Sequence record: MW021758.1
Direction: 5' to 3' (one strand)
DNA length: 64,000 bases
Shown piece by piece: positions 11,458-34,288 of this stretch. A program made the position numbers and the translations under genes. How positions within the stretch are numbered: position 1 is the first letter of the stretch; the number at the start of each line of letters is the position of its first letter. The notes beneath the pieces were generated by a model. It was not told the origin of the DNA. It saw nothing but the letters and a program-made list of their open reading frames with translations, and made no database searches.

Positions 11458-11487
11458 GGTTATATAGACTTGAAAAGTAATGGAAAT
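11458..11487 (-). promoter_or_regulatory. Early promoter, bipartite subtype
   Basis: Minus strand ATTTCC-N12-GTCTATATAACC. Confidence 0.7.
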
Positions 11488-11558
11488 CATTTTTTACGTA
11501 CCTTTTCTTTTTATGAAAAGGGTATTGGCCCGTGCGTCAACACGGGCCTAGTGGCGGA

Positions 11559-12173
11559 TTACCTCCTTAACTTATTCGAGATGAGTTTCCACTTCCTTTT
11601 CAAGAAAGTAAAAACTAATTTGATATTAATACTAATACCGTAAATCAGAGAAGACTGGTCGCATCCAGTCTTCTCTTTATGTTCTTTAACGGTAAAGTAC
11701 CCAAAAACAGCTTTAATCAACGCCAGTCGTTTTTCGACTAGTATCATGAATTCATAAGCAAACTTAGCTATGAAGGCAGATATCGAAAAGGACTTTAAGT
11801 ATGTTGTACAGATAAACAACAACAACGTACGAGCAGCCTTCTTCAAAATCATTTTAACTAATAACGATTCCATAGTAGCTGACTCTAACTTCTCAGCGAG
11901 CTCATTGAAACCAACGCGCTTCAACAAGCAGTAGATAACCACCTTAGATGCCTCTACGTCATATCCCTTCTCGATATTATCAAGAAGGGTGCAAAGTAGA
12001 TTCAATCCGTCACTAGAGTAGTCAGTCGCGCCCATTTTACTGGCGTAGTCGTTTAGTTCTTCAATGAACTTTTTCTTGCCGGATTTATTAAGAGACTTAA
12101 ATCTCTTAGCGTCTTCGACAACACCTTTGTCAATCCATAAACTAGGTGTTTTGAAATCGTAGTCGATTTCCAT
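11559..12173 (-). CDS. AT-rich membrane-associated protein
   Basis: Start moved to MEIDYDF at 12173 (SD AGGAG); hydrophobic segment in C-terminal half. Confidence 0.7.
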   Translation of the reverse strand: MEIDYDFKTPSLWIDKGVVEDAKRFKSLNKSGKKKFIEELNDYASKMGATDYSSDGLNLLCTLLDNIEKGYDVEASKVVIYCLLKRVGFNELAEKLESATMESLLVKMILKKAARTLLLFICTTYLKSFSISAFIAKFAYEFMILVEKRLALIKAVFGYFTVKEHKEKTGCDQSSLIYGISINIKLVFTFLKRKWKLISNKLRR

Positions 12174-12376
12174 GGTAGTGCTCCTATTCCGGACGAATGT
12201 TCCGGAACTCAGTTTAACGTGTACAATCGTACACGCTCTTCGACTCACGTAGTCCGTAAGTCAAAACTGGTTAAGTACTTCAATAGGAGTATATGGTTTC
12301 TATCTGATTACAGTATTTCCCCTTTAGAGGCAGGTTTGTGATTTTAACAAAGGTATTACTTCTACCCTTGCGCCAC

Positions 12377-12415
12377 GGTTATATAGACACCAAAAAAATT
12401 GGAAATGGATATAAT
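12377..12415 (-). repeat. 39-bp exact repeat copy 1 containing an early promoter
   Basis: GGTTATATAGACACCAAAAAAATTGGAAATGGATATAAT identical to 34250-34288. Confidence 0.9.
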
Positions 12416-12416
12416 C

Positions 12417-12446
12417 CCCTCAGTAGACCATTAGGTCTACTGAGGG
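12417..12446 (-). terminator. Hairpin terminator
   Basis: 13-bp stem CCCTCAGTAGACC-ATTA-GGTCTACTGAGGG. Confidence 0.7.
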
Positions 12447-12456
12447 AGTGTTATGT

Positions 12457-12618
12457 TTATTTGCGTAACAGGAGCTTATAGATCACGTAGCCGCCGAGAG
12501 GATCGAAGATCATGGAGATCCAGAACCACGTTTTGAAATTACCGCCCTTAGACTGCGCGCGATTAGCAACAACATAAGAGCCGATAACCCAGAGAACCAA
12601 CAGAATTAAAATATGCAT
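12457..12618 (-). CDS. 53-aa two-helix membrane protein (MHILILLVLWVIGSYVVANRAQSKGGNFKTWFWISMIFDPLGGYVIYKLLLRK)
   Basis: Manual translation; not in ORF track. Confidence 0.8.
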   Translation of the reverse strand: MHILILLVLWVIGSYVVANRAQSKGGNFKTWFWISMIFDPLGGYVIYKLLLRK

Positions 12619-12650
12619 TTACAATTACCCTTTATGATAAGACAGAATAA

Positions 12651-12672
12651 AGGTAGGGAATTAACCCTACCT
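12651..12672 (-). terminator. Terminator with AATTAA loop
   Basis: AGGTAGGG-AATTAA-CCCTACCT. Confidence 0.75.
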
Positions 12673-12718
12673 CATTTATTTACTTAAACGACTTGATCTT
12701 TTCAATCTTCTCTTCGAT

Positions 12719-12976
12719 CTATGATACCGGAGCGTCCAGGTAGTAGGCGATTTCCTCAGCCAATACCCCACGATCCAAACATTCAGCAATACCGTGTAAA
12801 TGCATTATTTCCCGTTGGCGTTTAGCCAGAACGTTAACGTCAGCATTATGTCTACGGTATTCTTCGAAGTGATGATCTTGTTCCCTCACCGATAACTCTA
12901 ATTCATCGGCTAAGAAAGATCCTTCAATTGCGAGTTTACCAGCGAAGGAATTCACGACAAACCCTCCCGTTGTCAT
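12719..12976 (-). CDS. Small HTH-like protein ending at an in-frame TAG (possible premature stop)
   Basis: LDRGVLAEEIAYYLDAPVS matches the motif in 23423-23764; frame stays open to TAA at 12680. Confidence 0.6.
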   Translation of the reverse strand: MTTGGFVVNSFAGKLAIEGSFLADELELSVREQDHHFEEYRRHNADVNVLAKRQREIMHLHGIAECLDRGVLAEEIAYYLDAPVS

Positions 12977-13106
12977 CTGTGGGTTCCGATAAGGTATGGA
13001 ACCCGTTCAGATACTTCGGATCAATGGAAGGCTGGAGTTCGAGGATATTCTCAATAACCTCCCGCACCGTTGCCGGTCGCTTCTCTTTCTTGGTTTCTTT
13101 CTCCAT
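12936..13106 (-). CDS. Hypothetical protein (MEKETKKE...)
   Basis: Probable start 13106 behind AGAGGG. Confidence 0.55.
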   Translation of the reverse strand: MEKETKKEKRPATVREVIENILELQPSIDPKYLNGFHTLSEPTDDNGRVCREFLRW

Positions 13107-13116
13107 ACACCCTCTT

Positions 13117-13989
13117 TTATTCTGGTCCCCACATACTTCTAGTTGGATCATTAGGAACGAGTTTAGGTTGTTCCGGCGTAAAGGTCGGTCCGGCATAACC
13201 TTCCTTCTGTTTGAAGGAACCTTTCAGATCTTTACAGTGCTCATCCAACTTTGCTGCGTAAGGGTTATTTGAATTTTCCTTAGGGCCGGTGATTTCGAAA
13301 TGAACTTCTTTACCGTCGATGACAGTAGAGAAATTATAACCGGAGCAGAGCATCATTTTGATGATTTCAGAATGGGTCTGATCGACGATGATTACCGGGT
13401 TACGCTCATCGGAATCCGACACGCCGATATCTTCCTCTGGATTCTCGCCAAGCTCAGTACCAGTTTCGTCATCGATCCAAATATCGATGGTTCTATAGTT
13501 GACGTTTTCGTCCTTAACCCAGCCTTTGGGCAGTTCTTTCGGCTGACCGACGTAATAGCGAATTGGGTTTTCAAACTTAGCATCCTCGACTTCGTAGTTC
13601 ACGTAGAAGCAACGTGGTACGAAGCGCCACCCGTACTCGTTAAAGTAGGTAGCGAATTCAGCAGCAGAGGCAGGGAACGCGTGTTCGTTGAGTACTTCCA
13701 ACTTGATAGAGACAATAGCCTCTTCGCTATCCATACGGATACCACTTGTCCGGATTATGAAGTCTGGTGAGCAAGTGAAGTCGTAGTGGTCATGGCCGTT
13801 GTACTGGGCACGTTGGTGGTTGTTAATAACCCGACCATACATGTCATCTTTACCGACGTTCATGTTACGTAGCTGGCAGAATAACGATTGCATATCCGAG
13901 TAGGACATGTTCATCATCTTACTGGCCTCGAACAGATCGAAGGTGACCAGATAGACTTTTTTGGTTAACTCTTTTACAGTTGTTTTCAT
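13117..13989 (-). CDS. Hypothetical protein
   Basis: 290 aa, SD GGAG. Confidence 0.85.
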   Translation of the reverse strand: MKTTVKELTKKVYLVTFDLFEASKMMNMSYSDMQSLFCQLRNMNVGKDDMYGRVINNHQRAQYNGHDHYDFTCSPDFIIRTSGIRMDSEEAIVSIKLEVLNEHAFPASAAEFATYFNEYGWRFVPRCFYVNYEVEDAKFENPIRYYVGQPKELPKGWVKDENVNYRTIDIWIDDETGTELGENPEEDIGVSDSDERNPVIIVDQTHSEIIKMMLCSGYNFSTVIDGKEVHFEITGPKENSNNPYAAKLDEHCKDLKGSFKQKEGYAGPTFTPEQPKLVPNDPTRSMWGPE

Positions 13990-14080
13990 CGTACTACTCT
14001 CCTAAAAACCGTAGCCTCTACGAGTGTCGCTATTGACCTGTGATAACTACGGCCGGGGTGTCGAGCGGAATTGCTCAGGG

Positions 14081-14608
14081 TTACGCTGCGTTCAGTTCTT
14101 CGATAGACCGAGCCATGAACGCTTGGTATTTCTCAACGTACTCGGTGATCTCGTATTCGAGTTCTTCTTTGAGTACGTTCTGGATATACTCTGGCAATGG
14201 GACCGAGTAATGATCCAGGATAGTTTTGATCATGTACGCACCCTTAACATCGTAAGGGACAAACGCATCGCACATGCCGTTGTAGTCAAGCGGATTGATT
14301 TCATCCGAACTCCAACGCTCGTTCATGTCGGCAGTGGAACAACCTTCGTAGTTGTTGCTGTCGAAGCAGAGGTCTTCATCGACGTCGTAAAGACGAATGA
14401 AGCCATGGTTGAGGTTATCTACGTACTGGATACTGTAACCTTTGTTCTGGAGTACTGCACCGACAGTCAGTGCGAATACGCCACAGTCACCGTTGTTGAT
14501 ATCCAGATCTGGACGAGTCTTCTCTGGATTGAAGTGACCGTACATCACTTTGAATTTGTCAGCGATTTCAGCAAAGTCTTTCTTGAAGTTTTCAATGTTC
14601 ATGCACAA
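14081..14608 (-). CDS. Papain/transglutaminase-like Cys-His-Asp protein
   Basis: NGDCGVFA...NHGFI...FDS motif order. Confidence 0.55.
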   Translation of the reverse strand: MCMNIENFKKDFAEIADKFKVMYGHFNPEKTRPDLDINNGDCGVFALTVGAVLQNKGYSIQYVDNLNHGFIRLYDVDEDLCFDSNNYEGCSTADMNERWSSDEINPLDYNGMCDAFVPYDVKGAYMIKTILDHYSVPLPEYIQNVLKEELEYEITEYVEKYQAFMARSIEELNAA

Positions 14609-14640
14609 AGCCCTCAGATTAATTTATCCTATTCATAATT

Positions 14641-14657
14641 GTGATATAGGCGTAAAT
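14641..14657 (-). promoter_or_regulatory. phiKZ-type early promoter
   Basis: Minus strand TTTACGCCTATATCAC. Confidence 0.7.
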
Positions 14658-14694
14658 TAAGTTTGATATGACCTTTAACCTAGAGTGACTCAAG

Positions 14695-15234
14695 ATGAAA
14701 ACAATTACGGTGTTCAGTACACCTGTTCCCTTGAAGGGATTTATCCATTGGTGTTTGTTGTTTGTTCTATATCTACTGGCTTTGGCAGTTGCCGCAGTAG
14801 TGACGCCATTCCTTCCAATCTTTGCGACTAAGGATGCGCGACTTCCTAAATGGCTCGATTGGTTCATGATGCCAGATAACGATTTGGATGGCGATAACGG
14901 GTGGAAGACAGAGCATACGCTCTGGAGAAAGAACCTACCGCCAAAAACAGCACAGTACATTTGCCGAGTCCTTTGGCTTTATCGGAACCCGCTCTATAAC
15001 TTCAGTATCCGGTTCTTGGGCGCACCTAAGTCTTCAGTCAAACCGACGGTAAAAGGTCCGGCCTGGAACAATCAGACAGGGATCTACAAAGACCACTACT
15101 GGATGATTTATTACATGGGCCCTAGCTTCATTAAAGGTAAACGTATCAAGATCTACTTGGGTTGGAAGTTGAAGACCGAGAATTTCGATACGTATCAGTT
15201 AGCGGTTCAATTCAACCCATTCAAAAGTCAATAG
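14695..15234 (+). CDS. Conserved phage membrane-anchored protein, usually near tail-fibre genes
   Basis: N-terminal TM; LPKWLDWF..PDN.LDGD, WLYRNP and LGWKL motifs. Confidence 0.7.
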   Translation: MKTITVFSTPVPLKGFIHWCLLFVLYLLALAVAAVVTPFLPIFATKDARLPKWLDWFMMPDNDLDGDNGWKTEHTLWRKNLPPKTAQYICRVLWLYRNPLYNFSIRFLGAPKSSVKPTVKGPAWNNQTGIYKDHYWMIYYMGPSFIKGKRIKIYLGWKLKTENFDTYQLAVQFNPFKSQ

Positions 15235-15243
15235 AGGTATTCG

Positions 15244-17310
15244 ATGTCTTTTAGCGACCCAATTAAAATATCTAATTTACCAAATAAAGATACTCTATCG
15301 GAAGGATCGGTATTTCCTACGGTAGATTCGGCTGGTAATGAGACCGGTAAAGTTTCTATCGGTACTTTGAGAGAGGTACTCGATCTTTCTAATGCGTTTA
15401 GCACCATTGAAGAAGGGATGTCTAAGACCATTGTTAATGAGGACTTCTTTGTCTACACTGATGAGAATCGTAAAGAGTTAGCGCTAAGGTACCGAAAAGT
15501 GGGTTCTGGGTCAGTCGTCTACGTCGACGAAAATAACGCACCTATTCTTTACACCACCAACCGTTTCCAAATAAGTCAGCCTATCCAGGTATCTTCGTTC
15601 AGTGACATCAAGGGTTTGAAGAATCTGAGGGATAAGCAGAAGGTAGAGTTAACGATTGAACTTAACGCCAGGGTCTATAACCGCGGAACGTTCATTGTAG
15701 ACTTAACCGATAAAACTACAGAAGATGACGGCGGTGTTAATCTAGTCACTAACTCAGGTGTCCGATTGTCTCGAGTTATTGAAGACGGCAATATGGAACT
15801 GGTCTGGTTCAAAAGTGAGAGTAATAGCTGGGATGATGCATTTGACGGACTAATCAAATACCGTACTAAGTTCACCAGTAATGCTGGAAAGGTATTTTTA
15901 CCTGCCATGAAGATCGTCCTTACCAAGCCCGTCATTCTACCATACTTTAATAAGGGAGCTAAATGTAGTTGGTTCCTGGAAGGCGCAGGCTCAGCTCCGG
16001 ACAACGGTACGGTGCTATCGTTCAATATTCCTCGTTCGACAGCGCTAGCTAACGGATGGGACAACGTCGGAGCGATTGATAATTGGGGTTCTGAGTTCAA
16101 GTTTAACTCACTGACTCTATGTAGGTTATGCGTCGAGGGGATATCTACAAAGATAGCGAACCCAGGTGACGAGGTAGGATTCGCCTTTTGTCACGGAGTT
16201 AAATGTCGAACCACAGGCTCTCTTTGGGAAGACGTAGTCATCCAGAACTTTAGAGGATCCGGCCTTTATCTCGACAACGCCTTTGACAATACCTTTAACC
16301 GCGTCGGTGTCTTTGCTTCTGGTCGTTTAAACGACGGTAAAGACTATATGAGTTACGTCGATATCGGCGACCCGGCCAACCAAGCGTTCCCTCCAGTATG
16401 GGTCACTTCCTCAAGACAGGGAGATGCCTCTAACTTCCTGAGCTGGTATGGCGGTAGTTTCGAACTCAATAACTGCACGCCGTTCCTTAAGGTAGATGGG
16501 GGTATTCAGATACACTTTACCAACTTACACTCAGAGAGACCTGGGCGCGGAAGTGGGATGACCGGTTCTCTACCTACCGGTACGTTTGCTCAAGTACAAG
16601 GTGAAGTTTGGTTTACTCAATGCGGCATTAGTAACTTCAGTCAATCGGTCGCATTAGGTCCGTACGCTAACGTCCAGATTAATGATTGTCCTCGTTTTAG
16701 CGGCGGTATAAGTCTGATTAACCCATCGGCTAAAGGTAAAGTAAGACTTAACATCACCAACTCATTTATTGGCGATGCCTATTTCACCGGATCCATTGAA
16801 ACCGATTTCCGATTCGTAAATACCCAATTTGCTAGCCTTAGACTCCCGGTTGTATCAGGTCAGGTTGCAATAACTAATTGCTTGGTTTTAGGTAATGTTG
16901 ACATCGTGGCCGGTAGTGGTTCTATACTACAGTCTGCATCGGGGATAAGGATGGTAAATACGGTAATTCAAGGAAGCGTAACAGGAGACGCGAACAGTCA
17001 GCGAATAACACTACTCGGTTGTCACGTTCTCGGAGATGTGACCTTGGGTAACGGCAACTGTACAGTACTTGGGAACACTATCCTAGGAACAGTATCCGTC
17101 CCATCACAACCGAGTAACTTCGTAATGGGTATCCACGTTCAGTCACCTAACGTGATATCCGTTAAAACATCCCCGTCAGAAATTTCCGGAACAGTACGTA
17201 AGGGACAGGTAGCAATCGCATACGACGGAACCGCTACGGACTCCATGTGGATTTGTAATACTGCCGGAGTAGGCGCTGCGGCTAAATGGTCTAAACTAGT
17301 TATGGCGTAA
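15244..17310 (+). CDS. Tailspike / putative polysaccharide depolymerase 1
   Basis: N-terminal head domain (TEDDGG..LVT..G.R..RV) followed by beta-helix-like I/V/G/N-rich repeats. Confidence 0.75.
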   Translation: MSFSDPIKISNLPNKDTLSEGSVFPTVDSAGNETGKVSIGTLREVLDLSNAFSTIEEGMSKTIVNEDFFVYTDENRKELALRYRKVGSGSVVYVDENNAPILYTTNRFQISQPIQVSSFSDIKGLKNLRDKQKVELTIELNARVYNRGTFIVDLTDKTTEDDGGVNLVTNSGVRLSRVIEDGNMELVWFKSESNSWDDAFDGLIKYRTKFTSNAGKVFLPAMKIVLTKPVILPYFNKGAKCSWFLEGAGSAPDNGTVLSFNIPRSTALANGWDNVGAIDNWGSEFKFNSLTLCRLCVEGISTKIANPGDEVGFAFCHGVKCRTTGSLWEDVVIQNFRGSGLYLDNAFDNTFNRVGVFASGRLNDGKDYMSYVDIGDPANQAFPPVWVTSSRQGDASNFLSWYGGSFELNNCTPFLKVDGGIQIHFTNLHSERPGRGSGMTGSLPTGTFAQVQGEVWFTQCGISNFSQSVALGPYANVQINDCPRFSGGISLINPSAKGKVRLNITNSFIGDAYFTGSIETDFRFVNTQFASLRLPVVSGQVAITNCLVLGNVDIVAGSGSILQSASGIRMVNTVIQGSVTGDANSQRITLLGCHVLGDVTLGNGNCTVLGNTILGTVSVPSQPSNFVMGIHVQSPNVISVKTSPSEISGTVRKGQVAIAYDGTATDSMWICNTAGVGAAAKWSKLVMA

Positions 17311-17386
17311 TAAATAGAGTGGGGGATTACCTCCACTCTATTATGCAACTTCCTATGAATTGACCAAATACAGATAAGGTTATCTC

Positions 17387-19564
17387 ATGATTAATGGCCA
17401 AAAGATATCTCAATTACCTTCGTCGTCTACACCAAAAGAAAACGACTATTTCCCATTCAATACGGTGAATGAACAAGGTGTATTGGAAACCGCAGTATTG
17501 GACTTGAACGATCTGCGTAAACAACTTGATTATCATTCCGCGTTTGATTCTCTTGAGAAAGGGATCGTAGCAACTAAAGTCGGCGATATTTTCTTTACCT
17601 ACGAAGACAGTCGCCACTTCTACGTTAACGAATATACTCGTAACGATGCTGGCGCAGTAGCTACTCTGAACGAACAGGGTAAGATTAAACGCCTCATCAC
17701 CAACGAAGCACTCCAGTACGCCAAAGTATTACGTACGGTTGAGAGCGTCTCTGATCTCCGTACTACTAAACCTATTTTCGATAACGAAGTTATTGAAGTT
17801 AAAAGTTATCGTGCAGGTTCAGGTATCGGTGGCGGTAAGTTTGCCTTTATTAAGACGGACAAAACTTCTACTGATGATGGCGGTGCAACTATTGTTGCCA
17901 CAGATGGTAGTCGCTGGAAACGTGTATTCGACAACGCCGGTGTAATCAACCCTACGTTCTGGGGCGCGGCGCCTAACGACAACAGCATCGACTCTGGCCC
18001 TGCATTTACCCGGATGTCCAAGTGGTCTGAGACTGTTCCGTTTACTAACGATACGACTCGTTCGATTAACGGTAACATTAAGATGGAATGTAATCCTGGT
18101 CGGTACTTTATCAAGACTACGATTACGCTACAGACTAAGACAATCGATTACGATTTCTCTGGAGCCATCCTCGACTTTACCCTGATGACCCCAGGTACTG
18201 CAGCAGCGCCTGTATACGGCATTAGTTGGGTTAACTTGCGTGGTTATACCCAAGGTACCATGGAGTGTCGTAATCTCCGCGCAGTCGGCCCTGGGATGGA
18301 TAAGTACGTACACTTCATGGGAATGAACGACACCTTCGCTTATTTCTGGGCACAGAACTCCATGTGCTTTATGGGTGGCGGTTGCGATCTGTTCTCCACT
18401 GGATTTACCTATAATTCCAATACGTACTACGTCAAGTTCTTCAACTACCAGTTTAACCATTGTAACATCTGCTACACCAACAATGCTGCAATGACTAACT
18501 CCGGGGAACAGATCCACTTCATCTCCTGTATCTTCTCCCAGTCGAATTACTTCATCAACGTTAACAAAGCACACACGATCTTTGACAACTGTTCCTTCGA
18601 CTATGCGTACAAGCGTTACGTCTTAGTAGACAGTGGTTCGGCTCGTTTGATCTTTAATGATGGCTGGTTCGAAGGCGAAGGTCCTTACGAGTATGCTTTC
18701 GAAGTGAAAGACGGACTCAATGCCAATATCGCGTTCAACGGCGTTAACTTCATTTTCCGTGCATCCAATACGAAGGCTAAGAGTAACGTCTTCTTTGCGG
18801 GTGATCGCTGTGCGATGTCGTTCGATAAATGTTACTTCAGTAATTTGGGTATCAGCAACGACGACCCTGCAATTACTGGTTGGGTATCGGGTAAAGGTAC
18901 AGTTACCTTCCGTGATAGTAAGTTGCCGCAGAACGGCCCGCCGTTGGCATTGACTTCGATTCAACCTGAAGTCCCTGAAGAGAACTACATTCGTTCAGAG
19001 ATCTTTAGCGATGTATCTCACTACGCACACGAAGTTTGGATCCCATCTCCTGGCGGTACGGGTTGTGAGATTCGTAAGAACCGAGTGGGCTGGGGTACTG
19101 CCTCGTCTACTAACTTCTCCATCCAGCGCCTTAACGGTTACATGCAAGTCGGTACTAACACCGTACCTAAAGATGGTAAGTATCAACTGTATATCGGTTC
19201 TATGCCTCTCAAAGGTAACGGTCCGGTAATCGCTCGAGTCAACTTAAGTAGTTGGGCATCTTCGGGTACGATTAGTATTCGCGTAGTCTACATGGCAGCT
19301 GAGTTCTTCGGTCCAGACGATGAGCGTTCACCTATCGTTTACAAGTCGGTATTTGGTGGCGGTTACGACCTTCAGTTGAACGGACCAGGGTCCTCGATCA
19401 AGACTTACGAGACTCCGCTTAACATCCAAGGTTACGACGGACAGCCACTTTCCTTTACCACGATTCCTGACTGGGCGACCCATGCAGCGTTCATGATTGA
19501 CGTTACTCGGGCACCAATGAACATGGCTCATCGGATCAACAGTATCTATATGAGGCAAATTTAA
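17387..19564 (+). CDS. Tailspike / putative polysaccharide depolymerase 2
   Basis: Same head domain (STDDGGATIVATDGSRWKR), then pectate-lyase-3-like entry FWGA....DSGPAF...NPGRYFI, then beta-helix. Confidence 0.85.
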   Translation: MINGQKISQLPSSSTPKENDYFPFNTVNEQGVLETAVLDLNDLRKQLDYHSAFDSLEKGIVATKVGDIFFTYEDSRHFYVNEYTRNDAGAVATLNEQGKIKRLITNEALQYAKVLRTVESVSDLRTTKPIFDNEVIEVKSYRAGSGIGGGKFAFIKTDKTSTDDGGATIVATDGSRWKRVFDNAGVINPTFWGAAPNDNSIDSGPAFTRMSKWSETVPFTNDTTRSINGNIKMECNPGRYFIKTTITLQTKTIDYDFSGAILDFTLMTPGTAAAPVYGISWVNLRGYTQGTMECRNLRAVGPGMDKYVHFMGMNDTFAYFWAQNSMCFMGGGCDLFSTGFTYNSNTYYVKFFNYQFNHCNICYTNNAAMTNSGEQIHFISCIFSQSNYFINVNKAHTIFDNCSFDYAYKRYVLVDSGSARLIFNDGWFEGEGPYEYAFEVKDGLNANIAFNGVNFIFRASNTKAKSNVFFAGDRCAMSFDKCYFSNLGISNDDPAITGWVSGKGTVTFRDSKLPQNGPPLALTSIQPEVPEENYIRSEIFSDVSHYAHEVWIPSPGGTGCEIRKNRVGWGTASSTNFSIQRLNGYMQVGTNTVPKDGKYQLYIGSMPLKGNGPVIARVNLSSWASSGTISIRVVYMAAEFFGPDDERSPIVYKSVFGGGYDLQLNGPGSSIKTYETPLNIQGYDGQPLSFTTIPDWATHAAFMIDVTRAPMNMAHRINSIYMRQI

Positions 19565-19569
19565 CAAAT

Positions 19570-19591
19570 GGCCGGTTTACCGGCCTTTTTA
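19570..19591 (+). terminator. Terminator after tailspike 2
   Basis: GGCCGGT-TT-ACCGGCC-TTTTT. Confidence 0.65.
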
Positions 19592-22252: not shown

Positions 22253-22253
22253 T

Positions 22254-28063: not shown

Positions 28064-28113
28064 GGTGATCTCCTGACAAAAATAATAGAGGGCCGAAGCC
28101 CTCATGTTTTTAG

Positions 28114-28566
28114 TTACTTAGTGACGACATCGTAGCCGATGAGTTTTTCAATAGTTAGAACATTGTTCGACTCAAGTGAATGTGCGATCACAATAGCGCG
28201 TATACCTAGTCCAAATGGTACGTTATCGTCAACCATCTTTCTGAGGCGCTTGCTCGGTTCGATTACGAGATACGGCTCGTCTGCCTTAAGGTCGGCGTCT
28301 ACCAAGATCCCGATGCTGTTAAACGTATCTTTTGCTTCGAGTCGCTTGAAGTAATCGGCGACATCGACAAAGCCAGTCATGTCCGGGTGCCCAAACGTAC
28401 CTACGACTTTACCGATGTTGTCCTTAGTGAACTTATCGATTACTTCTTCCGAAGCGTTATAGATCCGTCCGTCGATTTTAGACGGGACACCTAACTTACT
28501 TACGAAGATAGTAATGGTGCCATCTTCGTTAACTACGCGCGAATGTTCAGACATTAACAGTACCAC
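28114..28566 (-). CDS. Prohead-protease-like domain, probably inactive
   Basis: DGRIY...GTFGHP...RL...LGIRA...LIGYDVV; His and Ser positions replaced by Gly. Confidence 0.55.
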   Translation of the reverse strand: MVLLMSEHSRVVNEDGTITIFVSKLGVPSKIDGRIYNASEEVIDKFTKDNIGKVVGTFGHPDMTGFVDVADYFKRLEAKDTFNSIGILVDADLKADEPYLVIEPSKRLRKMVDDNVPFGLGIRAIVIAHSLESNNVLTIEKLIGYDVVTK

Positions 28567-28652
28567 TCATCAGGCCAGGAGAAATGCGCATTATTCATAA
28601 TACGTTCCCTTTAGGTTAAAAATAAGGGAGAGGAATTAACCCCTCCCTACGC

Positions 28653-28901
28653 TTAGTTACTGATACAGATAACTGACACGATATAGACGTACAGCGAAAC
28701 GTACTGGACGATAATAGCCCATTTGGCCTCGCGGTATTTACTAACGAAGAGTCCGACCGCTACAATGAAAGAAACGATCGAAGCGATAGGCGCGATCCAG
28801 AAAGGAACGACATCGTGAAAGTTAGGAACGGCGAGTGCCAAAGTTAACACCGTCAAACACGCCAGTGTAACGGCAATGGCAACCTTACACGCACTACTCA
28901 T
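28653..28901 (-). CDS. Three-TM membrane protein
   Basis: Hydrophobic throughout. Confidence 0.75.
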   Translation of the reverse strand: MSSACKVAIAVTLACLTVLTLALAVPNFHDVVPFWIAPIASIVSFIVAVGLFVSKYREAKWAIIVQYVSLYVYIVSVICISN

Positions 28902-29475
28902 ATTTCCCCTCCCGCCAATGTTTACGGCAGACAGCTACGTAGCTATCGTTACCCCCAATCTGAACCTGTGGGCCAGAACGCAGAACCTTACCCTCGCCAT
29001 CCAAACGGAGAACGTGAGTAGATTTAGAACCGCACCAACAGATCGATTTGATTTCTACCAACTTGTCAGCCATTGCTAACAGTCGAGCAGATCCAGGGAA
29101 CGCTTCGCCACGGAAGTCGTTACGTAGCCCATAGCAGAGCACTGGGATATCCATAGCGTCTACGATGAAGGCTAACTGACTTACTTGAGCAGCAGTGAGG
29201 AATTGAGCCTCATCAACCAGGATACAATCCAGCTTTCCGTTTAACAAAATGTCGTTACGGATATAGCTTGGAAGATCCATCTCTTCACGGATGATGACAG
29301 CTTCAACGTGAAGGCCGATTCGACTGACGACTTCTTGCTCAGAGTCACGCGTATCGATTGCAGGCTTCATTACCAGAGGACGCATACGACGTTCACGGTA
29401 GTTGTAGGCCGACTGAATAAGCGTGGTCGATTTCCCTGAGTTCATGGAAGCGTAGTAGAAGTAAAGATTTGACAT
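28894..29475 (-). CDS. tdk: Thymidine kinase
   Basis: ASMNSGKST, VDEAQF, YGLRNDF, CWCG and CRKH zinc ligands. Confidence 0.97.
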   Translation of the reverse strand: MSNLYFYYASMNSGKSTTLIQSAYNYRERRMRPLVMKPAIDTRDSEQEVVSRIGLHVEAVIIREEMDLPSYIRNDILLNGKLDCILVDEAQFLTAAQVSQLAFIVDAMDIPVLCYGLRNDFRGEAFPGSARLLAMADKLVEIKSICWCGSKSTHVLRLDGEGKVLRSGPQVQIGGNDSYVAVCRKHWREGKYE

Positions 29476-29487
29476 CTAGCGATTCCT

Positions 29488-29787
29488 TTAAAGCGTGAAT
29501 ACCTCAAAGTACCAGGCCGTAATAACACAACCCAGAACCGATCCCAACGCACACCAGATAACCGCGTTGGTGACCGAGGTAACGATCTTAGCACGGAGAA
29601 TCCACAGTACTGCCAGATTCTCAATGATAATCGACGCAATGAAAATAAAGACCAGTTGGTTGTAAATGTCTTCAGGTTCAACCAAGAACTGGAAGTACCC
29701 AAAGACAACCACCACGAATTGCACGAGGTAGATTAAGTTCTCTACCGCCCCGCCACGACGCGGGTATTTTTGGTCAGTCTTTAGCAT
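29488..29787 (-). CDS. Membrane protein
   Basis: Three hydrophobic segments. Confidence 0.7.
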   Translation of the reverse strand: MLKTDQKYPRRGGAVENLIYLVQFVVVVFGYFQFLVEPEDIYNQLVFIFIASIIIENLAVLWILRAKIVTSVTNAVIWCALGSVLGCVITAWYFEVFTL

Positions 29788-30103
29788 GGTGAATGCTCCG
29801 TCGTTTAGACTTGTTATCGACTCTCTCGTTCTCCATCGACGTAGTGATCCTGGCTACAACGTAACCGAGGAACGAAGTGAAGGGCAGGAAGCCGAGATGA
29901 CTCCAGTCTTTAGTAATAGGTGCGATAACCACAAAACCAAAGATAGTCATAAGACCAGCTGCGACCAACACCCAAGTCGTCGCTCTAGTCAACTGACCAA
30001 TGACTTCAGAGTGACGAATCCCGATGAACGTGAAGGTTGACACCACGAAGAGAACGAAGTAAAAGCCAGACAGGAAATTCTCAGAACGAATATACTCTAT
30101 CAT
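29774..30103 (-). CDS. Membrane protein
   Basis: Three hydrophobic segments. Confidence 0.75.
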   Translation of the reverse strand: MIEYIRSENFLSGFYFVLFVVSTFTFIGIRHSEVIGQLTRATTWVLVAAGLMTIFGFVVIAPITKDWSHLGFLPFTSFLGYVVARITTSMENERVDNKSKRRSIHHAKD

Positions 30104-30104
30104 T

Positions 30105-30416
30105 TTAAATGTCCATGATGTAGAAAAGGATCGTTAATGAAACGGCGAATGAAATACTTGGGATCATCGACAGGTAATCCAAGTACCCTTTCTCCAGCCA
30201 CGCCTTGAGGCGATTCGTACTACGGAAGATACCGTAGCTATAAAGCATAATGCAAACGACTACTCCGGAGAAACCCAGCGTAGTAATAACCATGAGTGTA
30301 TCTTCACTGAGGTCTTTGTAGATCACTGAGAAAATATAAGTAAGTGCAGCAGCATAAATCGGAACAATCAACGTAAGTAAACGGGGCACAACGAATCTCC
30401 TTATTAGACAAAACAA
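30105..30416 (-). CDS. Membrane protein
   Basis: Three hydrophobic segments. Confidence 0.7.
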   Translation of the reverse strand: MFCLIRRFVVPRLLTLIVPIYAAALTYIFSVIYKDLSEDTLMVITTLGFSGVVVCIMLYSYGIFRSTNRLKAWLEKGYLDYLSMIPSISFAVSLTILFYIMDI

Positions 30417-30425
30417 AAAATAGAG

Positions 30426-30445
30426 GGCAGGGAACTACCCCTGCC
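30426..30445 (-). terminator. Terminator closing the acidic-peptide unit
   Basis: GGCAGGG-AACTAC-CCCTGCC, U-tract on -. Confidence 0.75.
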
Positions 30446-30456
30446 GAAGAACGAAC

Positions 30457-30573
30457 TTAATCGTCTTCATCCTCTACTTCTCCAACTTCCAGCTCTTCCT
30501 CTTCTTCGTCCAATTCCCCCGCAGCAGCAGAACAAAGAATAGCACCCATGATAAAGTCCAAGAAATCACCCAT
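30457..30573 (-). CDS. 38-aa acidic micropeptide (MGDFLDFIMGAILCSAAAGELDEEEEELEVGEVEDEDD)
   Basis: Manual translation; SD GGAG; lies between promoter 30618 and terminator 30426. Confidence 0.8.
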   Translation of the reverse strand: MGDFLDFIMGAILCSAAAGELDEEEEELEVGEVEDEDD

Positions 30574-30617
30574 CTTTAAAAACTCCAATATGTTTTATTA
30601 AATGTTCATTCAAATAA

Positions 30618-30634
30618 GTGATATAGTTCTGAAA
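30618..30634 (-). promoter_or_regulatory. phiKZ-type early promoter
   Basis: Minus strand TTTCAGAACTATATCAC followed by TTATTTGAAT (as at 60334). Confidence 0.75.
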
Positions 30635-30647
30635 AGAATTCGAATAA

Positions 30648-30671
30648 GGTAGAGAGCCGAAGCCCTCTACC
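30648..30671 (-). terminator. Terminator after phoH
   Basis: Minus strand GGTAGAGGGC-TTCG-GCTCTCTACC. Confidence 0.75.
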
Positions 30672-30677
30672 CAATGG

Positions 30678-31463
30678 TTACGAATAAATCTCCAGACCCA
30701 GCTGACAGATCGGTGAACGCACGCAGTCATCCTTAACGAACTTGATTACGGGAATGTCAATATCCCGTTCTTCAATACGACGAATCAGATCAAGCAGACC
30801 TGAATCGTTTTTGTTTGGCAGATCGCACTGCTCAATGTCGCCATTGATAATTACAGTGGAGTTCATGCCGATACGCGTAATGAAGAGACGCATCTGGTTG
30901 ACAGTAACGTTCTGAGCTTCGTCCAGAATGACAACCGCATCATCGAATGTACGACCACGCATATAAGCGAAAGGTGCAATCTCGACTTTCTCGATCATCG
31001 GTTTCAGGCAATACTCGAGGAAGCTATTACCCAGGCGTTTACGCAACACGTCGTAAACTGGACGGAAGAACGGGCGGAATTTTTCGGAGATGTCACCGGG
31101 CAAGAAACCCAGATCTTCTTCAGCAGTCAACACAGGACGCGTTACGATAATCCGATCAGTCTCTTTTGCCAGAAGACGATCAGCTGCCCAGGCAGCGCAG
31201 ATATAGGTTTTACCTGCACCAGCAGAGCCCGTAGACACGATGATGTTGCTTAGTTCTAAAGCGTTAAGGTATTGCGCTTGGTTATCGTTACGTGGCTCCA
31301 GAGGGCTTGTATCGCGCTTCTCTTTAGCCATGCCGATAACGTCGTGACCACCGGCAGTTGGGAACTCTACCAGATTATCAATGCCACGATTGTTTTGTCT
31401 TTTTGCTTTACGAACATCGCGACGTTTAACTGTCGCGGCTTTTTGACGACCCATCTGTACCAC
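30678..31463 (-). CDS. phoH: PhoH-like ATPase
   Basis: GSAGAGKT, LGFLPGD, AYMRGRTF, LDEAQN, GDIEQCD. Confidence 0.95.
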   Translation of the reverse strand: MVQMGRQKAATVKRRDVRKAKRQNNRGIDNLVEFPTAGGHDVIGMAKEKRDTSPLEPRNDNQAQYLNALELSNIIVSTGSAGAGKTYICAAWAADRLLAKETDRIIVTRPVLTAEEDLGFLPGDISEKFRPFFRPVYDVLRKRLGNSFLEYCLKPMIEKVEIAPFAYMRGRTFDDAVVILDEAQNVTVNQMRLFITRIGMNSTVIINGDIEQCDLPNKNDSGLLDLIRRIEERDIDIPVIKFVKDDCVRSPICQLGLEIYS

Positions 31464-31581
31464 CTTAGCGGGAGATTAAGAGGTTTCTTAAACGGGGGAG
31501 TTCAGAAACGTTTCGCGTTCATAAAAAATAAAAGAGTAATACGTAAAATAATCCCCTACCCGGATAGGTAGAGGGATCGGT

Positions 31582-31947
31582 TTAGTTCATGACAACCCAA
31601 GTACCTTTAGGAGCGTACTTGCGATAGAATTCTTTCTTGGCACCGTTACGAATCATGGCTACGATGATGTTACCGTTCTCGGTTGTGATCTTGGCCATCA
31701 GCTCGAAGCCTGCATCGCATTGGAAGAAGCTAACGACGTAGACGAGGTTATCTTTATCGATACCGTTGTCATTGTACATCAGCGTACAGCGAGAGGTTTT
31801 ATGGGTTTGCAGGTTTTTGACCCGAGCAGTAGTGTCGCCCACTACGAAATCGTAGTCAGGTGCGTCGCTCATGTGGATCAGACTTGCATTGGCAGAGAAA
31901 GATGCCAGGGACAGTACGGCTACGAATAACGCGATAACGAATTTCAT
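31582..31947 (-). CDS. Secreted two-Cys family protein A
   Basis: Signal peptide ending ANA; C-x22-C. Confidence 0.85.
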   Translation of the reverse strand: MKFVIALFVAVLSLASFSANASLIHMSDAPDYDFVVGDTTARVKNLQTHKTSRCTLMYNDNGIDKDNLVYVVSFFQCDAGFELMAKITTENGNIIVAMIRNGAKKEFYRKYAPKGTWVVMN

Positions 31948-32285
31948 TTGGTTGTTTCCTTATTGAAGTAGTTGCTGTAGTAAACTACATTGGTTGCCTT
32001 GTCACCGATGATAGCTTGCGTGAAAGGTTGGTTGTCGTAGGTCTTGTGGGCGAACATTATGTTGGCGCCACAACTATAGAGTTTCAGTTGGTACTTTCCG
32101 TATTCTGAATCGAGTTCCCGGCTGGTCTTCTCTAACTCACAATACAGGGTCTGGTCGTCGTAATTAACGACTGAGGTTTTATCACCGATCACGGCATTAA
32201 AGTCAGTTCCCTCACTAAGGGTCGTGGTGTCAGCATATGCGCTAAAAGAAATCAAAGCCAGTAATACGATGATAAAACGGTTCAT
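31944..32285 (-). CDS. Secreted two-Cys family protein B
   Basis: Signal peptide ending AYA; C-x22-C. Confidence 0.85.
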   Translation of the reverse strand: MNRFIIVLLALISFSAYADTTTLSEGTDFNAVIGDKTSVVNYDDQTLYCELEKTSRELDSEYGKYQLKLYSCGANIMFAHKTYDNQPFTQAIIGDKATNVVYYSNYFNKETTK

Positions 32286-32303
32286 GTCAAATTGCCTTAT
32301 TGA

Positions 32304-32663
32304 TTAGTCGATGAGTTCAAGAGCAGCCAGCGGCAGTTCTTTGGTGTAGAGAGTATCTTTGTACAGGAAGACGCTAACTTCTACAGTGTGACGTTCTTGG
32401 TTAGTGGTGAAGGTAGCCCACATCTTACCACCACAAAGGTAGTTAGCACCACGGTAAGTTGTACCATCACTTTCTTTACCCGTGATGTTTTCGTTGAAGG
32501 TACAACGAGTAACACCGCCGTGTGCGTCGTTCTTAATTTTCAGCAGGTTACCGCGAAGAGTAATCTCATTGCTGTAGTCATCGTACAGACGATAGTTGTT
32601 AGCATAAGCAGAACCAGCAAAAGTCAGAAGAGCGATAGCGAAGATAGCGTGGATGAGTTTCAT
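32304..32663 (-). CDS. Secreted two-Cys family protein C
   Basis: Signal peptide ending AYA; C-x22-C. Confidence 0.85.
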   Translation of the reverse strand: MKLIHAIFAIALLTFAGSAYANNYRLYDDYSNEITLRGNLLKIKNDAHGGVTRCTFNENITGKESDGTTYRGANYLCGGKMWATFTTNQERHTVEVSVFLYKDTLYTKELPLAALELID

Positions 32664-32733
32664 TTGGTTTTCCTAATTAAGATTGGGACAAGTGAGAATA
32701 AACTAGGGGAACATGTCCCCCTAGTAAAGTTTG

Positions 32734-33186
32734 TTAAGCAATTTTGCACTGAGCCATTTCACAACCGGCATATCTGGAAGTGACATAATGGAGAGCATCA
32801 TTGTGATGTTTCCATGGCGCCGTAAAACCGTACCAGGAAGCCCCAACAGCGATTAACAGGTTACCCAACACTTCGCCTTGGGCATACTCTCCAAAGACGA
32901 TTACGCGAGTTCCCAGTTCAGTTTCCAGGTTCACCAGGCCAGGTAAGTCCATGTAGGTTGTGAAGTCGTATTCGTTGGCCACCACTACGGCATATTTCTG
33001 TTCTTTTATTTCGAAGAATTTGAACGAGTTTTTATTAGCCTTGGCCAATTCAAACGCTTCACCGAATTCGTTCCCAAGAATGCATTTTACAATTGCGGTC
33101 TGGAAAGGTGAATCAGACAGCGCGATGAAAGCATGACCTTCTACGTCTGACTTAACGAATTTCTTGAGGTGTTGGATCGGGTTCAT
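32734..33186 (-). CDS. Hypothetical protein
   Basis: 150 aa, SD AAGGA. Confidence 0.8.
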   Translation of the reverse strand: MNPIQHLKKFVKSDVEGHAFIALSDSPFQTAIVKCILGNEFGEAFELAKANKNSFKFFEIKEQKYAVVVANEYDFTTYMDLPGLVNLETELGTRVIVFGEYAQGEVLGNLLIAVGASWYGFTAPWKHHNDALHYVTSRYAGCEMAQCKIA

Positions 33187-33261
33187 TGTTATTTCCTTTT
33201 TAAGTTTAAAGTGTTTGTATTTAGTTATTAAAGGAGGGGATTTCCCCTCCGTATTTTTTGG

Positions 33262-33582
33262 TTATTTCTTCAGAACCGAATCAATGAAGTCCGGGTAGTC
33301 GTCTTTCTGATCGAAGATAGCGAACGTGATCAGTTCACTTTCCGGCTTGTTACGAATCCAGAGCTGCTTGCCGTTGCTGCATTTCCAGGCAGAGGTAGCA
33401 TCTTTACTGATTACCAAAGCGCACTTGGTGACTTTACCATTCTGCTCGATTTCTGCTAACTTACCATCAATGGTGAATGTAACGCCCTTGTCGGTATGGT
33501 AGACGTTGCTTGCTTCCGCTTTAGGAAGGAAAGGTACAGTTGCAATAAGAACAGTAGTTAGTACGGTAATGATTGTTTTCAT
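33262..33582 (-). CDS. Secreted two-Cys family protein D (short loop)
   Basis: Signal peptide ending AEA; C-x13-C. Confidence 0.8.
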   Translation of the reverse strand: MKTIITVLTTVLIATVPFLPKAEASNVYHTDKGVTFTIDGKLAEIEQNGKVTKCALVISKDATSAWKCSNGKQLWIRNKPESELITFAIFDQKDDYPDFIDSVLKK

Positions 33583-33674
33583 TATTAGATCTCCATTTGT
33601 AAAATTTTAGGTATAAAGTATTGTTATGAGGAGAGCCTAAGAAACTTCCGATTCCCTAAGCTCCCCTTGTTGGT

Positions 33675-34193
33675 TTAACTGATGTTTAACCTCCGCTTTA
33701 TCTTAGGTAGTAACCGAACGACTAGTGATTTAAAGCACATAACCAGAGTTGGACGAGTTAGGTCGTCCAACTCTTTATGCTCGTGTTTCATGACTAAGTC
33801 GATAGTGATCAATCTACGTTCCTTAACCAGCATTATGTAGAATGAAATCAACGCTGAAAGTATTAGTAGAATAAGTGACTGTTTCGGGAAAGTGTAGATG
33901 ATAGTACCTATTGCCAGAAGCTTCACAAAGTTGCTTTGGTAGGCTTTAGAGAATAGGTTATAGAGAAACATGGATTTATCTACGATCTCCTCAGGGGACA
34001 GATCTTTGATGGTCATGGTTAAGTCGTCTAAATGTATTTTATTAAACAACTTTAACTCAGGCTCCTCCCAAAAACGATCTAACGTGATACCTACCACGTA
34101 ACACGCCCTCCCGCCCATGTCCTCCTTCATAGCCTTATCTACTCGGTAGTTGTTGATAACCCCAAGTAAATAGGACTTTACTCGCTTTAACAT
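33675..34193 (-). CDS. AT-rich membrane-associated protein
   Basis: Two hydrophobic segments; first gene after repeat copy 2. Confidence 0.75.
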   Translation of the reverse strand: MLKRVKSYLLGVINNYRVDKAMKEDMGGRACYVVGITLDRFWEEPELKLFNKIHLDDLTMTIKDLSPEEIVDKSMFLYNLFSKAYQSNFVKLLAIGTIIYTFPKQSLILLILSALISFYIMLVKERRLITIDLVMKHEHKELDDLTRPTLVMCFKSLVVRLLPKIKRRLNIS

Positions 34194-34249
34194 AAGCTTT
34201 CCCTTTTGTAATGTTTTGAAAAGAAGGCTTTACTATAGACCTTCGCGCT

Positions 34250-34288
34250 GGTTATATAGACACCAAAAAAATTGGAAATGGATATAAT
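34250..34288 (-). repeat. 39-bp exact repeat copy 2 containing an early promoter
   Basis: Identical to 12377-12415; terminator hairpin 34293-34320 lies just upstream. Confidence 0.9.

Follow-up and report, generated by a model that had tools for sequence, protein, structure and literature searches.

Does a φKZ-like jumbo phage read all of its early genes from one type of promoter, or has a minority of its promoters been set apart? The question is raised by three sites on the minus strand of the stretch of DNA analysed here (the window, 64,000 nucleotides), in which an ATTTCC hexamer precedes, at identical spacing, a variant of the AT-rich octamer present at seven other sites. The original prediction saw in them a promoter subtype with an additional box, assigned either to a separate regulon with its own factor or to a mobile cassette that captures accessory genes.

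The genome and the sites

The window corresponds, with 100% identity, to positions 186001-250000 of MW021758.1, i.e. the genome of the Serratia jumbo phage Yaphecito (Moabitevirus, φKZ-like), which encodes its own multisubunit RNA polymerase. The pattern GTTATATAGAC-N12-GGAAAT of the plus strand (ATTTCC-N12-GTCTATATAAC on the minus strand) is matched exactly at all three predicted places, namely 11459-11487, 12378-12406 and 34251-34279, and found 0 matches in 100 shuffles. The predicted 39-bp duplicate is exact as well, its copies lying 21,873 bp apart, and the seven TATAT[T/C]AC sites of the window are present, with the first octamer T (minus strand) at 5598, 14648, 22243, 30625, 40374, 48757 and 60341. 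The predicted promoters are composed as follows.

11452..11487, minus strand: promoter p3 (first site); pattern match, PWM score 24.4
11482-11487, minus strand: -30 box of p3, ATTTCC
11471-11476, minus strand: -20 element of p3, TTTTCA
11459-11466, minus strand: octamer of p3, TATATAAC
11453-11458, minus strand: G+C-rich 6 nt of p3, CTAGGC
11452, minus strand: predicted start G of p3, placed by the φKZ/201φ2-1 rule
12377..12415, minus strand: promoter p2 (second site), copy 1 of the 39-bp repeat; pattern match
12401-12406, minus strand: -30 box of p2
12378-12385, minus strand: octamer of p2
12371, minus strand: predicted start G of p2
34250..34288, minus strand: promoter p1 (third site), copy 2 of the 39-bp repeat; pattern match
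34274-34279, minus strand: -30 box of p1
34251-34258, minus strand: octamer of p1
34244, minus strand: predicted start G of p1

The early-promoter family

A genome-wide motif scan returned 25 sites with a PWM score >17 on the minus strand and none on the plus strand, compared with a mean of 0.2 per shuffle. These strong early-promoter-like sites comprise 20 canonical ones and a variant subclass of four core members and one related site, and are built alike, from TCnA as the -30 element, TTTnA as the -20 element and TATATYAC as the octamer. Counted relative to the octamer, the flagged sites carry TC at -18/-17, A at -15 and TTT from -9 to -7, all aligned with the canonical sites, of which 13/20 have the TC and 20/20 the A at the same spacing. 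ATTTCC is, therefore, not an extra box, as had been proposed, but the form that a family-wide -30 element takes at these sites; its longer version, ATTTC, is found at 5/5 subclass sites versus 1/20 canonical ones. The duplicated pair p1/p2 has G instead of an otherwise invariant A at -5, and in p2 TTTGG replaces the usual TTTnA, with a PWM score (23.0) that is low for the family.

Early promoters of φKZ and 201φ2-1 are conserved at -10, -20 and -30 (PMC11512511), with an AT-rich motif ~10 bp upstream of the start (PMC7598289, PMC11512511), and the same three-part architecture in Yaphecito counts for membership of the φKZ-type family; the motifs of phages N1M2 and OBP start with TBYA-W5-TTTCA (PMC7058600). 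The likeness to the early promoters of these four phages extends to a TATATTAC-type AT-rich octamer that precedes the start by ~10 bp, a stretch rich in T near -20, an element near -30 and T/G at the start, and, for φKZ-like early promoters at large, to a number of a few dozen per genome, mostly on one strand and before early operons (PMC7598289, PMC11512511, PMC8244752, PMC7058600). These papers differ in giving one early consensus, without a subclass, whereas in Yaphecito a minor set, maintained across genera, has its own fixed form of the octamer and a pre-start stretch rich in G+C.

One canonical site directly precedes the gene of an RNAP β-like subunit, which scores over the Pfam cut-off and is 29-56% identical to annotated jumbo-phage RNAP β subunits, those of φKZ-like Pseudomonas phages included; the match of the β'-like subunit is weak. 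The related phage Moabite is cited in a review of RNAP-encoding jumbo phages. Because the flagged sites keep the TCnA element at -30, the T-rich -20 element and the AT-rich octamer of the 20 canonical sites, both groups, judged by their sequence, most likely share one virion-borne multisubunit RNA polymerase.

What sets the variant sites apart

The octamer TATATAAC of all three flagged sites is one change away from the canonical TATATYAC. It is this change, an A at octamer position 6, together with the G+C-rich 6 nt between the octamer and the predicted start, that marks the subclass: G+C accounts for 4-5/6 of these nucleotides in the subclass and for <=2 in all 20 canonical sites. The separation holds both in Yaphecito and in its relative Totoro (MWU p about 2e-4, a significance that is overstated, as the statistics treat the sites as independent though the members are paralogous copies). 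The core members form two look-alike pairs, p1/p2 and p3/p4, the fourth member, p4, heading gp181. A distinct subtype, as predicted, does exist, conserved in six Moabitevirus genomes and with a counterpart set in two genera of Klebsiella phages, where the positions are largely syntenic; its definition by ATTTCC was wrong, and what discriminates is the variant octamer together with the G+C-rich 6 nt ahead of the predicted start.

We favour, with a probability of about 0.55, the reading that these sites are a kinetic subclass of φKZ-type early promoters, served by the same virion polymerase and evolutionarily maintained. The A at position 6 and the G+C-rich 6 nt to be melted, which are A/T-rich at canonical sites, would change the kinetics of initiation and not the identity of the polymerase; formation of the open complex would be harder, and firing might be weaker, delayed, or dependent on supercoiling or temperature. 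The result would be another dose or timing for short, terminator-insulated units that start with fast-turnover accessory genes, several of which would encode small membrane proteins. T7 promoters of classes II and III, like bacterial promoters whose discriminator is rich in G+C, are cases in which one polymerase serves two classes that differ at few positions around the melting/initiation region, and in which such differences lead to different strength, timing or sensitivity to conditions; the comparison is an analogy only, the Yaphecito polymerase being an unrelated multisubunit phage enzyme. A literature search found no measured effect of pre-start composition on the φKZ-type polymerase family. 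A search of sequencing runs returned no transcriptome of an infection; those that contain window DNA are wastewater 'RNA-Seq' runs only, with contigs of 150-270 nt that are uninformative on starts.

Conservation and concerted change

All five sites are present in Yaphecito, Moabite, BUCT660, ParM-25, 2050HW and Totoro. The p3 sequence is unchanged across five Moabitevirus genomes and has a single change, within the N12 spacer, in Totoro. The Klebsiella phages FBKp24 and KpLz-2_45 have four variant-octamer sites each, among 22-23 canonical TATATCAC-type sites; the octamer reads TATATWGC in 7/8 of them, the G+C count before the start is raised (p about 0.008, overstated for the same reason) and the layout is the 1+2+1 of Yaphecito, with three positions syntenic and that of p2 in the same neighbourhood, without strict synteny. 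In PhiEaH1 a variant site precedes the homologue of gp180; in that phage, most canonical sites read GTG at the start and G before the start is not a mark of the subclass, whereas in the Moabitevirus and Klebsiella-phage genomes it marks mainly variant sites. A very high G+C content of the pre-start stretch is found in Moabitevirus only.

Both Totoro copies of the duplicate read GGCATC where Yaphecito has GGTGTC (TG -> CA), at positions that vary freely in canonical sites. Because they share the same 2-nt change, the pair (12377-12415 and 34250-34288) evolves in concert and, as far as sequence comparison can tell, is kept identical by gene conversion, not by a recent gene-block duplication. Paralogy of gp217 and gp257, the genes behind the two copies, would make the repeat part of such a block, and the similarity detected was weak and local (BLASTP E 0.03; Totoro gp217 versus gp257, E 0.001; hhalign probability 4%). 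More relatives for testing concerted evolution were sought in IMG/VR, where a pattern scan gave 0 matches, and with a looser pattern in metagenomes, where the 102 loci found were essentially all chance in AT-rich DNA, none being close to Moabitevirus.

The same comparison bears on the possibility, which we consider doubtful, that there is no functional distinction and that the sites are a lineage of promoter copies, related by shared ancestry and gene conversion, with their oddities tolerated as drift. It would accommodate the look-alike pairs and the concerted change, the three FBKp24 copies that are near-identical over ~45 bp, the FBKp24 position p1 that carries the sequence type seen at p3/p4 in other genomes, and the fact that the variant nucleotides differ by genus (A6 in Moabitevirus, G7 in the Klebsiella phages). 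It is at odds with the G+C count, which is unchanged at each site, and 4-5/6 in every member, despite ~10 substitutions (~40%) in the 24 pre-start positions between Yaphecito and Totoro, and with the persistence of the variant set since the genera diverged (RNAP β amino-acid identity 55-56%) without reversion to the octamer of the at least 20 other sites. As a side observation, look-alike copies are spaced by ~21-22 kb in both Yaphecito and FBKp24, which is regarded as a by-product of synteny.

A separate regulon, i.e. a different polymerase form or a specificity factor of its own serving a distinct temporal class (e.g. delayed-early or middle), is unlikely. The full separation of the classes by octamer position 6 and pre-start composition, the longer ATTTC and the persistence of the variant set at matching positions across genera would all fit it, as would gp219 (window 12719-12976), a small protein whose annotation gives it an RpoN-like DNA-binding domain and which is encoded just upstream of p2. 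All three canonical recognition elements are, however, kept with their spacing unchanged, the genera share no element particular to the subclass, and the sites are unlike the published φKZ middle/late motifs (TACT around -22; TATG at the start). The gp219 protein has neither a Pfam match nor a homologue in FBKp24, KpLz-2_45 and PhiEaH1, and was rejected as a general factor of the subclass, not being conserved outside the genus. A factor proper to these sites is without support from the sequence.

Genes, terminators and leaders

The genes that come first behind the three flagged sites are as follows.

11065..11400, minus strand: gp216, 111 aa, first gene behind p3; hydrophobic segment at residues 44-76
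11559..12173, minus strand: gp217, 204 aa; 37.6% GC, one hydrophobic segment
33675..34193, minus strand: gp257, 172 aa; 39.9% GC, hydrophobic segment at residues 98-126

The three sites had been said to head AT-rich membrane-protein genes. This applies in composition to gp217 and gp257, with gp216 being average (46.7% GC), and a single hydrophobic segment is found in all three, whereas gp181, behind the fourth member, has none. Searches with gp216, gp217, gp257, gp181 and the genes next to them gave nothing significant in Pfam or PHROGs, gp181 having only a weak sub-threshold Pfam match; further down the same operons the PHROGs are the PhoH-like gp251 and three families of unknown function. 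The gp216 protein is 58% identical in Totoro. Homologues of gp217 are confined to Moabitevirus, and gp257 is found in the Moabite/2050HW lineage and absent from Totoro, where p1 directly heads the gp256 orthologue (a 100-aa protein, 36% identity, E 3e-17), so that gp257 and the hairpin that follows it form an insertion/deletion unit. Totoro has, in turn, an extra 46-aa ORF behind p4, and from genus to genus each position is followed by a different first gene. The hairpins and leaders are predicted as follows.

11501..11548, minus strand: two hairpins (11527-11548, 11501-11522) separating gp217 from p3, where the gp217 unit likely terminates; upstream-region fold -17.7 kcal/mol
12417..12446, minus strand: 13-bp hairpin upstream of p2, immediately behind gp218, likely a terminator; -27.3 kcal/mol
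34293..34320, minus strand: 12-bp hairpin upstream of p1, behind gp258, likely a terminator; -25.1 kcal/mol
33630..33667, minus strand: strong hairpin after gp257; intergenic stretch -24.2 kcal/mol
11433..11446, minus strand: p3 leader hairpin CCAGA-GTAA-TCTGG, then a T-run; terminator-like prediction
12174..12371, minus strand: predicted gp217 leader, ~198 nt before the start codon
34223..34244, minus strand: p1 leader hairpin GAAGG...CCTTC (fold); Totoro homology stops just past it

That the sites directly follow a likely terminator is borne out by the strong hairpins at the second and third and roughly at the first, and about half of the canonical sites are alike in this. Upstream terminators and leader hairpins were rejected as marks of the subclass, since canonical sites have them just as often, and leaders do not, on average, fold with lower energies than random 42-mers. 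In the p3 leader hairpin Totoro has a compensatory C-G -> T-A change (CTAGA...TCTAG). The gp217 leader has a 5' hairpin (12347-12371) and then a three-way junction closed by a helix between CUCCUAUU and the ribosome-binding AAUAGGAG; the fold of 12160-12371 has an MFE of -60.3 kcal/mol (z -4.17, 0/200 shuffles as good), and the 3' 130 nt are nearly invariant between Yaphecito and Totoro, two pairs being kept by two-sided changes. An Rfam search of window 10900-12500 returned nothing at gathering score.

The mobile, gene-capturing cassette of the original prediction survives in part: the promoters themselves stay at fixed syntenic positions, while the concerted pair and the turnover of genes directly behind the leader (gp257, the Totoro 46-aa ORF) agree with it. 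A recombination cassette could be modelled on the PeSL (promoter-early stem-loop) cassettes of T4-type phages (Arbiol et al. 2010, PMC2839356; PMC4122927), in which a terminator stem-loop is fused to an early promoter, near-identical copies are scattered among small accessory ORFan genes, and insertions, deletions and replacements occur next to them. We regard as improbable that the unit of terminator and promoter mainly supplies short homologies for shuffling accessory genes in the same way. A stem-loop of predicted terminator function is indeed followed by an early promoter at p2 and p1, with the identical 39-bp copy 22 kb away, genes have been gained or lost directly behind the leader at p1 and p4, and first genes differ between genera at each position. 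The gp257 indel, however, starts right after the p1 leader and ends at a plain hairpin without a promoter, the positions are stable across genera, a crossover of the two direct copies would remove 22 kb including tail-fibre genes, and canonical promoters are similarly variable in their flanks (e.g. a 770-bp Totoro insertion behind the site at record 126736). PeSL promoters are, moreover, sigma-70-like and numerous, whereas the Yaphecito promoter is of the phage-polymerase type, with only two identical copies at positions syntenic across genera, and exchange from cassette to cassette is hypothetical.

Phage 'morons' offer another likeness, as the gp217 unit consists, in order, of a hairpin, a promoter, one AT-rich gene and hairpins, and gp257 and its hairpin occur together or not at all; morons differ in being classically known from temperate phages with host-type promoters, while the Yaphecito units use the phage's own early promoter type.

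The reading that the A variant (TATAAC) makes host sigma-70 promoters was rejected: TTTCCA-N16-TATAAC matches 4/6 and 5/6 of the consensus hexamers, but the -10 hexamer lacks the last T, a consensus scan gave no promoter of the sigma-70 type at the three sites, and transcription in φKZ-type phages does not rely on the polymerase of the host (PMC8244752).

Implications

For φKZ-like phages one early consensus is known, and the timing of host-independent transcription is only partly understood. A bolder and tentative extension would be that the Moabitevirus/Maaswegvirus/Siatvirus lineage has a dedicated second early-promoter class of four fixed slots, homogenised by gene conversion and read under other conditions or by another form or factor of the polymerase; if true, the host-independent transcription of nucleus-forming phages would include a further tier, temporal or conditional, that has yet to be described. 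With its deviation in the melting region, matching positions in several genera and concerted evolution, the subclass offers a mutable handle on promoter tuning of the virion polymerase and, should the kinetic difference hold up, both classes would be ready orthogonal parts of differing strength for phage engineering. The set also shows where new accessory genes enter these genomes, namely directly behind an insulated early promoter.

The phage and its early-promoter family

The whole window corresponds to positions 186001-250000 of MW021758.1, the 275,554-bp genome of Serratia phage vB_SmaM_Yaphecito (Moabitevirus), with 100% identity over window 10000-14000. The genome encodes a multisubunit RNA polymerase (RNAP) β-like subunit, which exceeds the Pfam cut-off and is 29-56% identical to annotated jumbo-phage RNAP β subunits (those of φKZ-like Pseudomonas phages included), and gives a weak β'-like match. 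Since jumbo-phage-like RNAP subunits are encoded, and a review of RNAP-encoding jumbo phages cites Moabite, it is reasonable to regard the TATATTAC-like motifs as predicted φKZ-type early promoters. In transcript-mapped phages, an AT-rich motif centred approximately 10 bp 5′ of early starts is ascribed to the virion polymerase (PMC7598289).

With a position weight matrix trained on 15 TATAT[T/C]AC sites and spanning -21 to +8 around the octamer, 25 sites in the whole genome exceed 17 bits, all of them minus-strand and none plus-strand (0.2 per shuffled genome). Every one of the 25 precedes an ORF, and one lies immediately ahead of the RNAP β-like gene. The family consensus reads TCnA (-18 to -15)-N5-TTTnA (-9 to -5)-N4-TATATYAC-TnnWWTGAWAG, with positions counted from the octamer. 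The same three-part layout, with strong conservation at -10, -20 and -30, characterizes the early promoters of φKZ and 201φ2-1 (PMC11512511), and the N1M2 and OBP motifs open with TBYA-W5-TTTCA (PMC7058600). By the published rule, transcription is predicted to begin at the conserved G located seven bases past the octamer.

The strong early-promoter-like sites are confined to one strand also in 2050HW, Totoro and KpLz-2_45, and in FBKp24 as well, except for one weak plus-strand match. At the canonical promoter ahead of the RNAP β-like gene (record 136722-136740) the first ATG of the ORF falls inside the conserved start-site motif (ATGATAG), only 4 nt past the octamer, so that either translation really starts at a later codon or the mRNA has almost no leader.

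A subclass with an altered octamer and pre-start segment

The ATTTCC-type pattern originally predicted at three sites is found there exactly (0 occurrences in 100 shuffles), and a genome-wide scan allowing up to two mismatches returns five minus-strand sites:

Window 11459-11487, minus strand: exact match (p3), heading gp216 and the following genes
Window 12378-12406, minus strand: exact match (p2), with gp217 as the sole gene behind it and hairpins on both sides
Window 34251-34279, minus strand: exact match (p1), heading gp257
Record 170764-170792, minus strand: fourth core member (p4), from the pattern scan with up to two mismatches
Record 255835-255863, minus strand: fifth, related site, from the same scan

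Predicted starts fall at window 11452 (p3), 12371 (p2) and 34244 (p1) and at record 170757 (p4). The exact 39-bp duplicate also holds, at 12377-12415 and 34250-34288, 21,873 bp apart. ATTTCC itself, which had been taken for an additional box, occupies the exact position of the family-wide -30 element: the 20 canonical sites have TC at -18/-17 in 13 cases and A at -15 in all, the longer form ATTTC being enriched in the subclass (5/5 versus 1/20). The A variant at octamer position 6 does discriminate, with TATATAAC at four sites and TATATACC at one, versus TATATYAC or TATATTCC. So does the composition of the 6 nt between the octamer and the predicted start, where G+C amounts to 4-5 in all five subclass sites and to at most 2 in all 20 canonical ones. 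The duplicated pair (p1 and p2) carries G at -5, where all other family sites have A, and its matrix scores are among the lowest of the family.

Upstream hairpins and leader folding were discarded as marks of the subclass, because about half of the canonical sites have such hairpins too, and leader energies show no difference from those of canonical sites or of random 42-mers. A sigma-70 consensus scan of the flagged sites called nothing.

Conservation and concerted change

All five sites are found in Yaphecito, Moabite, BUCT660, ParM-25, 2050HW and Totoro, the last being approximately 81% identical in nucleotide sequence to the window in the subclass-promoter region. The pre-start G+C separation from canonical sites recurs in Totoro: between Yaphecito and Totoro there are approximately 10 substitutions in the 24 pre-start positions of the four core sites, and, as these leave the G+C count of every site unaltered, selection looks to be acting on the composition of this segment, not on its sequence.

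Both copies of the duplicated pair read GGCATC in Totoro and GGTGTC in every other genome, at two positions that vary freely across canonical promoters. Because the same two-base change is improbable as an independent event in both copies (approximately 1e-4, a rough estimate), the pair evolves in concert, gene conversion being the simplest explanation. Only the promoter itself is identical: upstream hairpins and downstream leaders differ, and the proteins behind p1 and p2 share marginal local similarity only.

Counterparts in other genera

In the Maaswegvirus Klebsiella phage FBKp24 (RNAP β 56% identical), approximately 23 canonical TATATCAC sites are accompanied by four variants. Three of these, at 96659, 118318 and 139761, are near-identical copies, two reading TATATTGC and one TATATAGC; the remaining one, at 121331, reads TATATTTC, and its upstream half TTTCCAATTTTTTT matches the Yaphecito pair. 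KpLz-2_45 (Siatvirus) has four TATATWGC sites (281719, 262831, 259900 and 238944). The variant sites are laid out as one, two adjacent and one in all three genera. By flanking-gene homology, p1 is syntenic in the other genera (5′ of an operon whose last gene is PhoH-like), as are p3 (between the gp223 and gp210 homologues) and p4 (between the head-protein gene gp182 and gp180); p2 lies in the same neighbourhood with different flanking genes. Coincidence of at least three of the four variant positions among approximately 25 has a hypergeometric p of approximately 0.007, assuming a one-to-one promoter map. In Erwinia phage PhiEaH1, a variant site, TATATTCT, lies 5′ of the gp180 homologue, with a near-identical second copy elsewhere.

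The variant nucleotides are not the same between genera, and the pairing of look-alike sites largely follows genome more than position: p1 of FBKp24 looks like that phage's p3 and p4, whereas in KpLz the upstream half of p1 is TCCAATTTTTTT, as at p2. Such pairing by genome points to conversion among subclass members. Extreme pre-start G+C richness is found in Moabitevirus only, the shift in the Klebsiella phages being modest (means 2.25-2.75 versus 1.2-1.5, p approximately 0.008).

The three near-identical FBKp24 copies (approximately 45 bp) are separated by 21.7 and 21.4 kb, and the Yaphecito pair by 21.9 kb; this regularity of approximately 21-22 kb is probably synteny.

How the subclass may be read

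The comparative pattern, as a statement about sequences, is solid. The published accounts consulted on φKZ, 201φ2-1 and relatives give a single early consensus and describe no subclass. Every recognition element is kept at canonical spacing in these sites, and what is altered is the -10-like octamer, along with the segment to be melted; one virion polymerase would thus serve them and the canonical sites alike, with altered initiation kinetics. Because elements and spacing are kept and octamer and melting segment are changed, we infer that this is the most economical and most likely reading. Analogies for altered kinetics are provided by the class II and class III promoters of T7 and by the G+C-rich discriminators of bacteria. 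A rival is that a dedicated factor or polymerase form reads the subclass. Alternatively, the sites may be paralogous copies, functionally neutral, or the units may be mainly recombinational in role.

Genes behind the promoters

The first gene behind each subclass position varies from genus to genus. Gp257 is absent from Totoro, where homology at p1 covers the promoter and the leader hairpin, is then interrupted, and returns at gp255, with p1 directly preceding the gp256 orthologue. Since Totoro lacks gp257, and in Yaphecito a strong hairpin of its own directly follows the gene, gp257 and its hairpin behave as an insertion/deletion block. At p4, 139 bp are inserted in Totoro, and they contain a 46-aa ORF immediately past the leader. 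At least one canonical site shows a like event (a 770-bp Totoro insertion behind record 126736), and gene gain or loss is therefore regarded as a general property of early-promoter slots, subclass specificity being unsupported at these small numbers. The anatomy of the Yaphecito units is similar to that of the promoter-early stem-loop (PeSL) cassettes of T4-type phages (PMC2839356), from which they differ in promoter type and in the stability of their positions; exchange between units would be hypothetical.

The surroundings of the subclass promoters (window 8228-12618 and 31582-34604) are rich in genes for small proteins that have a signal peptide or a single hydrophobic segment (gp215, gp216, gp217, gp218, gp256, gp257 and gp258), independently of promoter type. 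Gp219 (window 12719-12976, minus strand; 85 aa), just 5′ of the two adjacent subclass promoters, gives no Pfam hit and was not found beyond Moabitevirus; in the Moabite record the orthologue is listed as a DNA-binding domain that matches the RpoN C-terminal domain in HHpred.

Structured leaders and candidate RNAs

The predicted gp217 leader (window 12174-12371, minus strand) covers approximately 198 nt before the start codon and has strong structure (z -4.17 for the folded stretch 12160-12371). It folds as a three-way junction, in whose closing helix CUCCUAUU is paired with AAUAGGAG, the ribosome-binding site. Over the 130 nt at its 3′ end the leader is near-invariant between Yaphecito and Totoro, as against only 80% identity for the protein; it is a candidate translational riboregulator without an Rfam family.

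Outside the window, a conserved unit of approximately 125 nt lies behind the fifth promoter (TATATACC; record 255660-255870) and ends in a terminator hairpin, which has compensatory changes in Totoro and precedes the next ORF. The first approximately 20 transcribed bases (GGAAATAAGACA...) are also found behind canonical promoters in FBKp24 (214039) and KpLz-2_45 (51195), and the unit is a candidate small RNA common to three genera.

Wastewater metagenome runs labelled RNA-Seq contain contigs of 150-270 nt that are 96-100% identical to window 10400-14800, so that Moabitevirus phages are present in those samples, the material probably being DNA.
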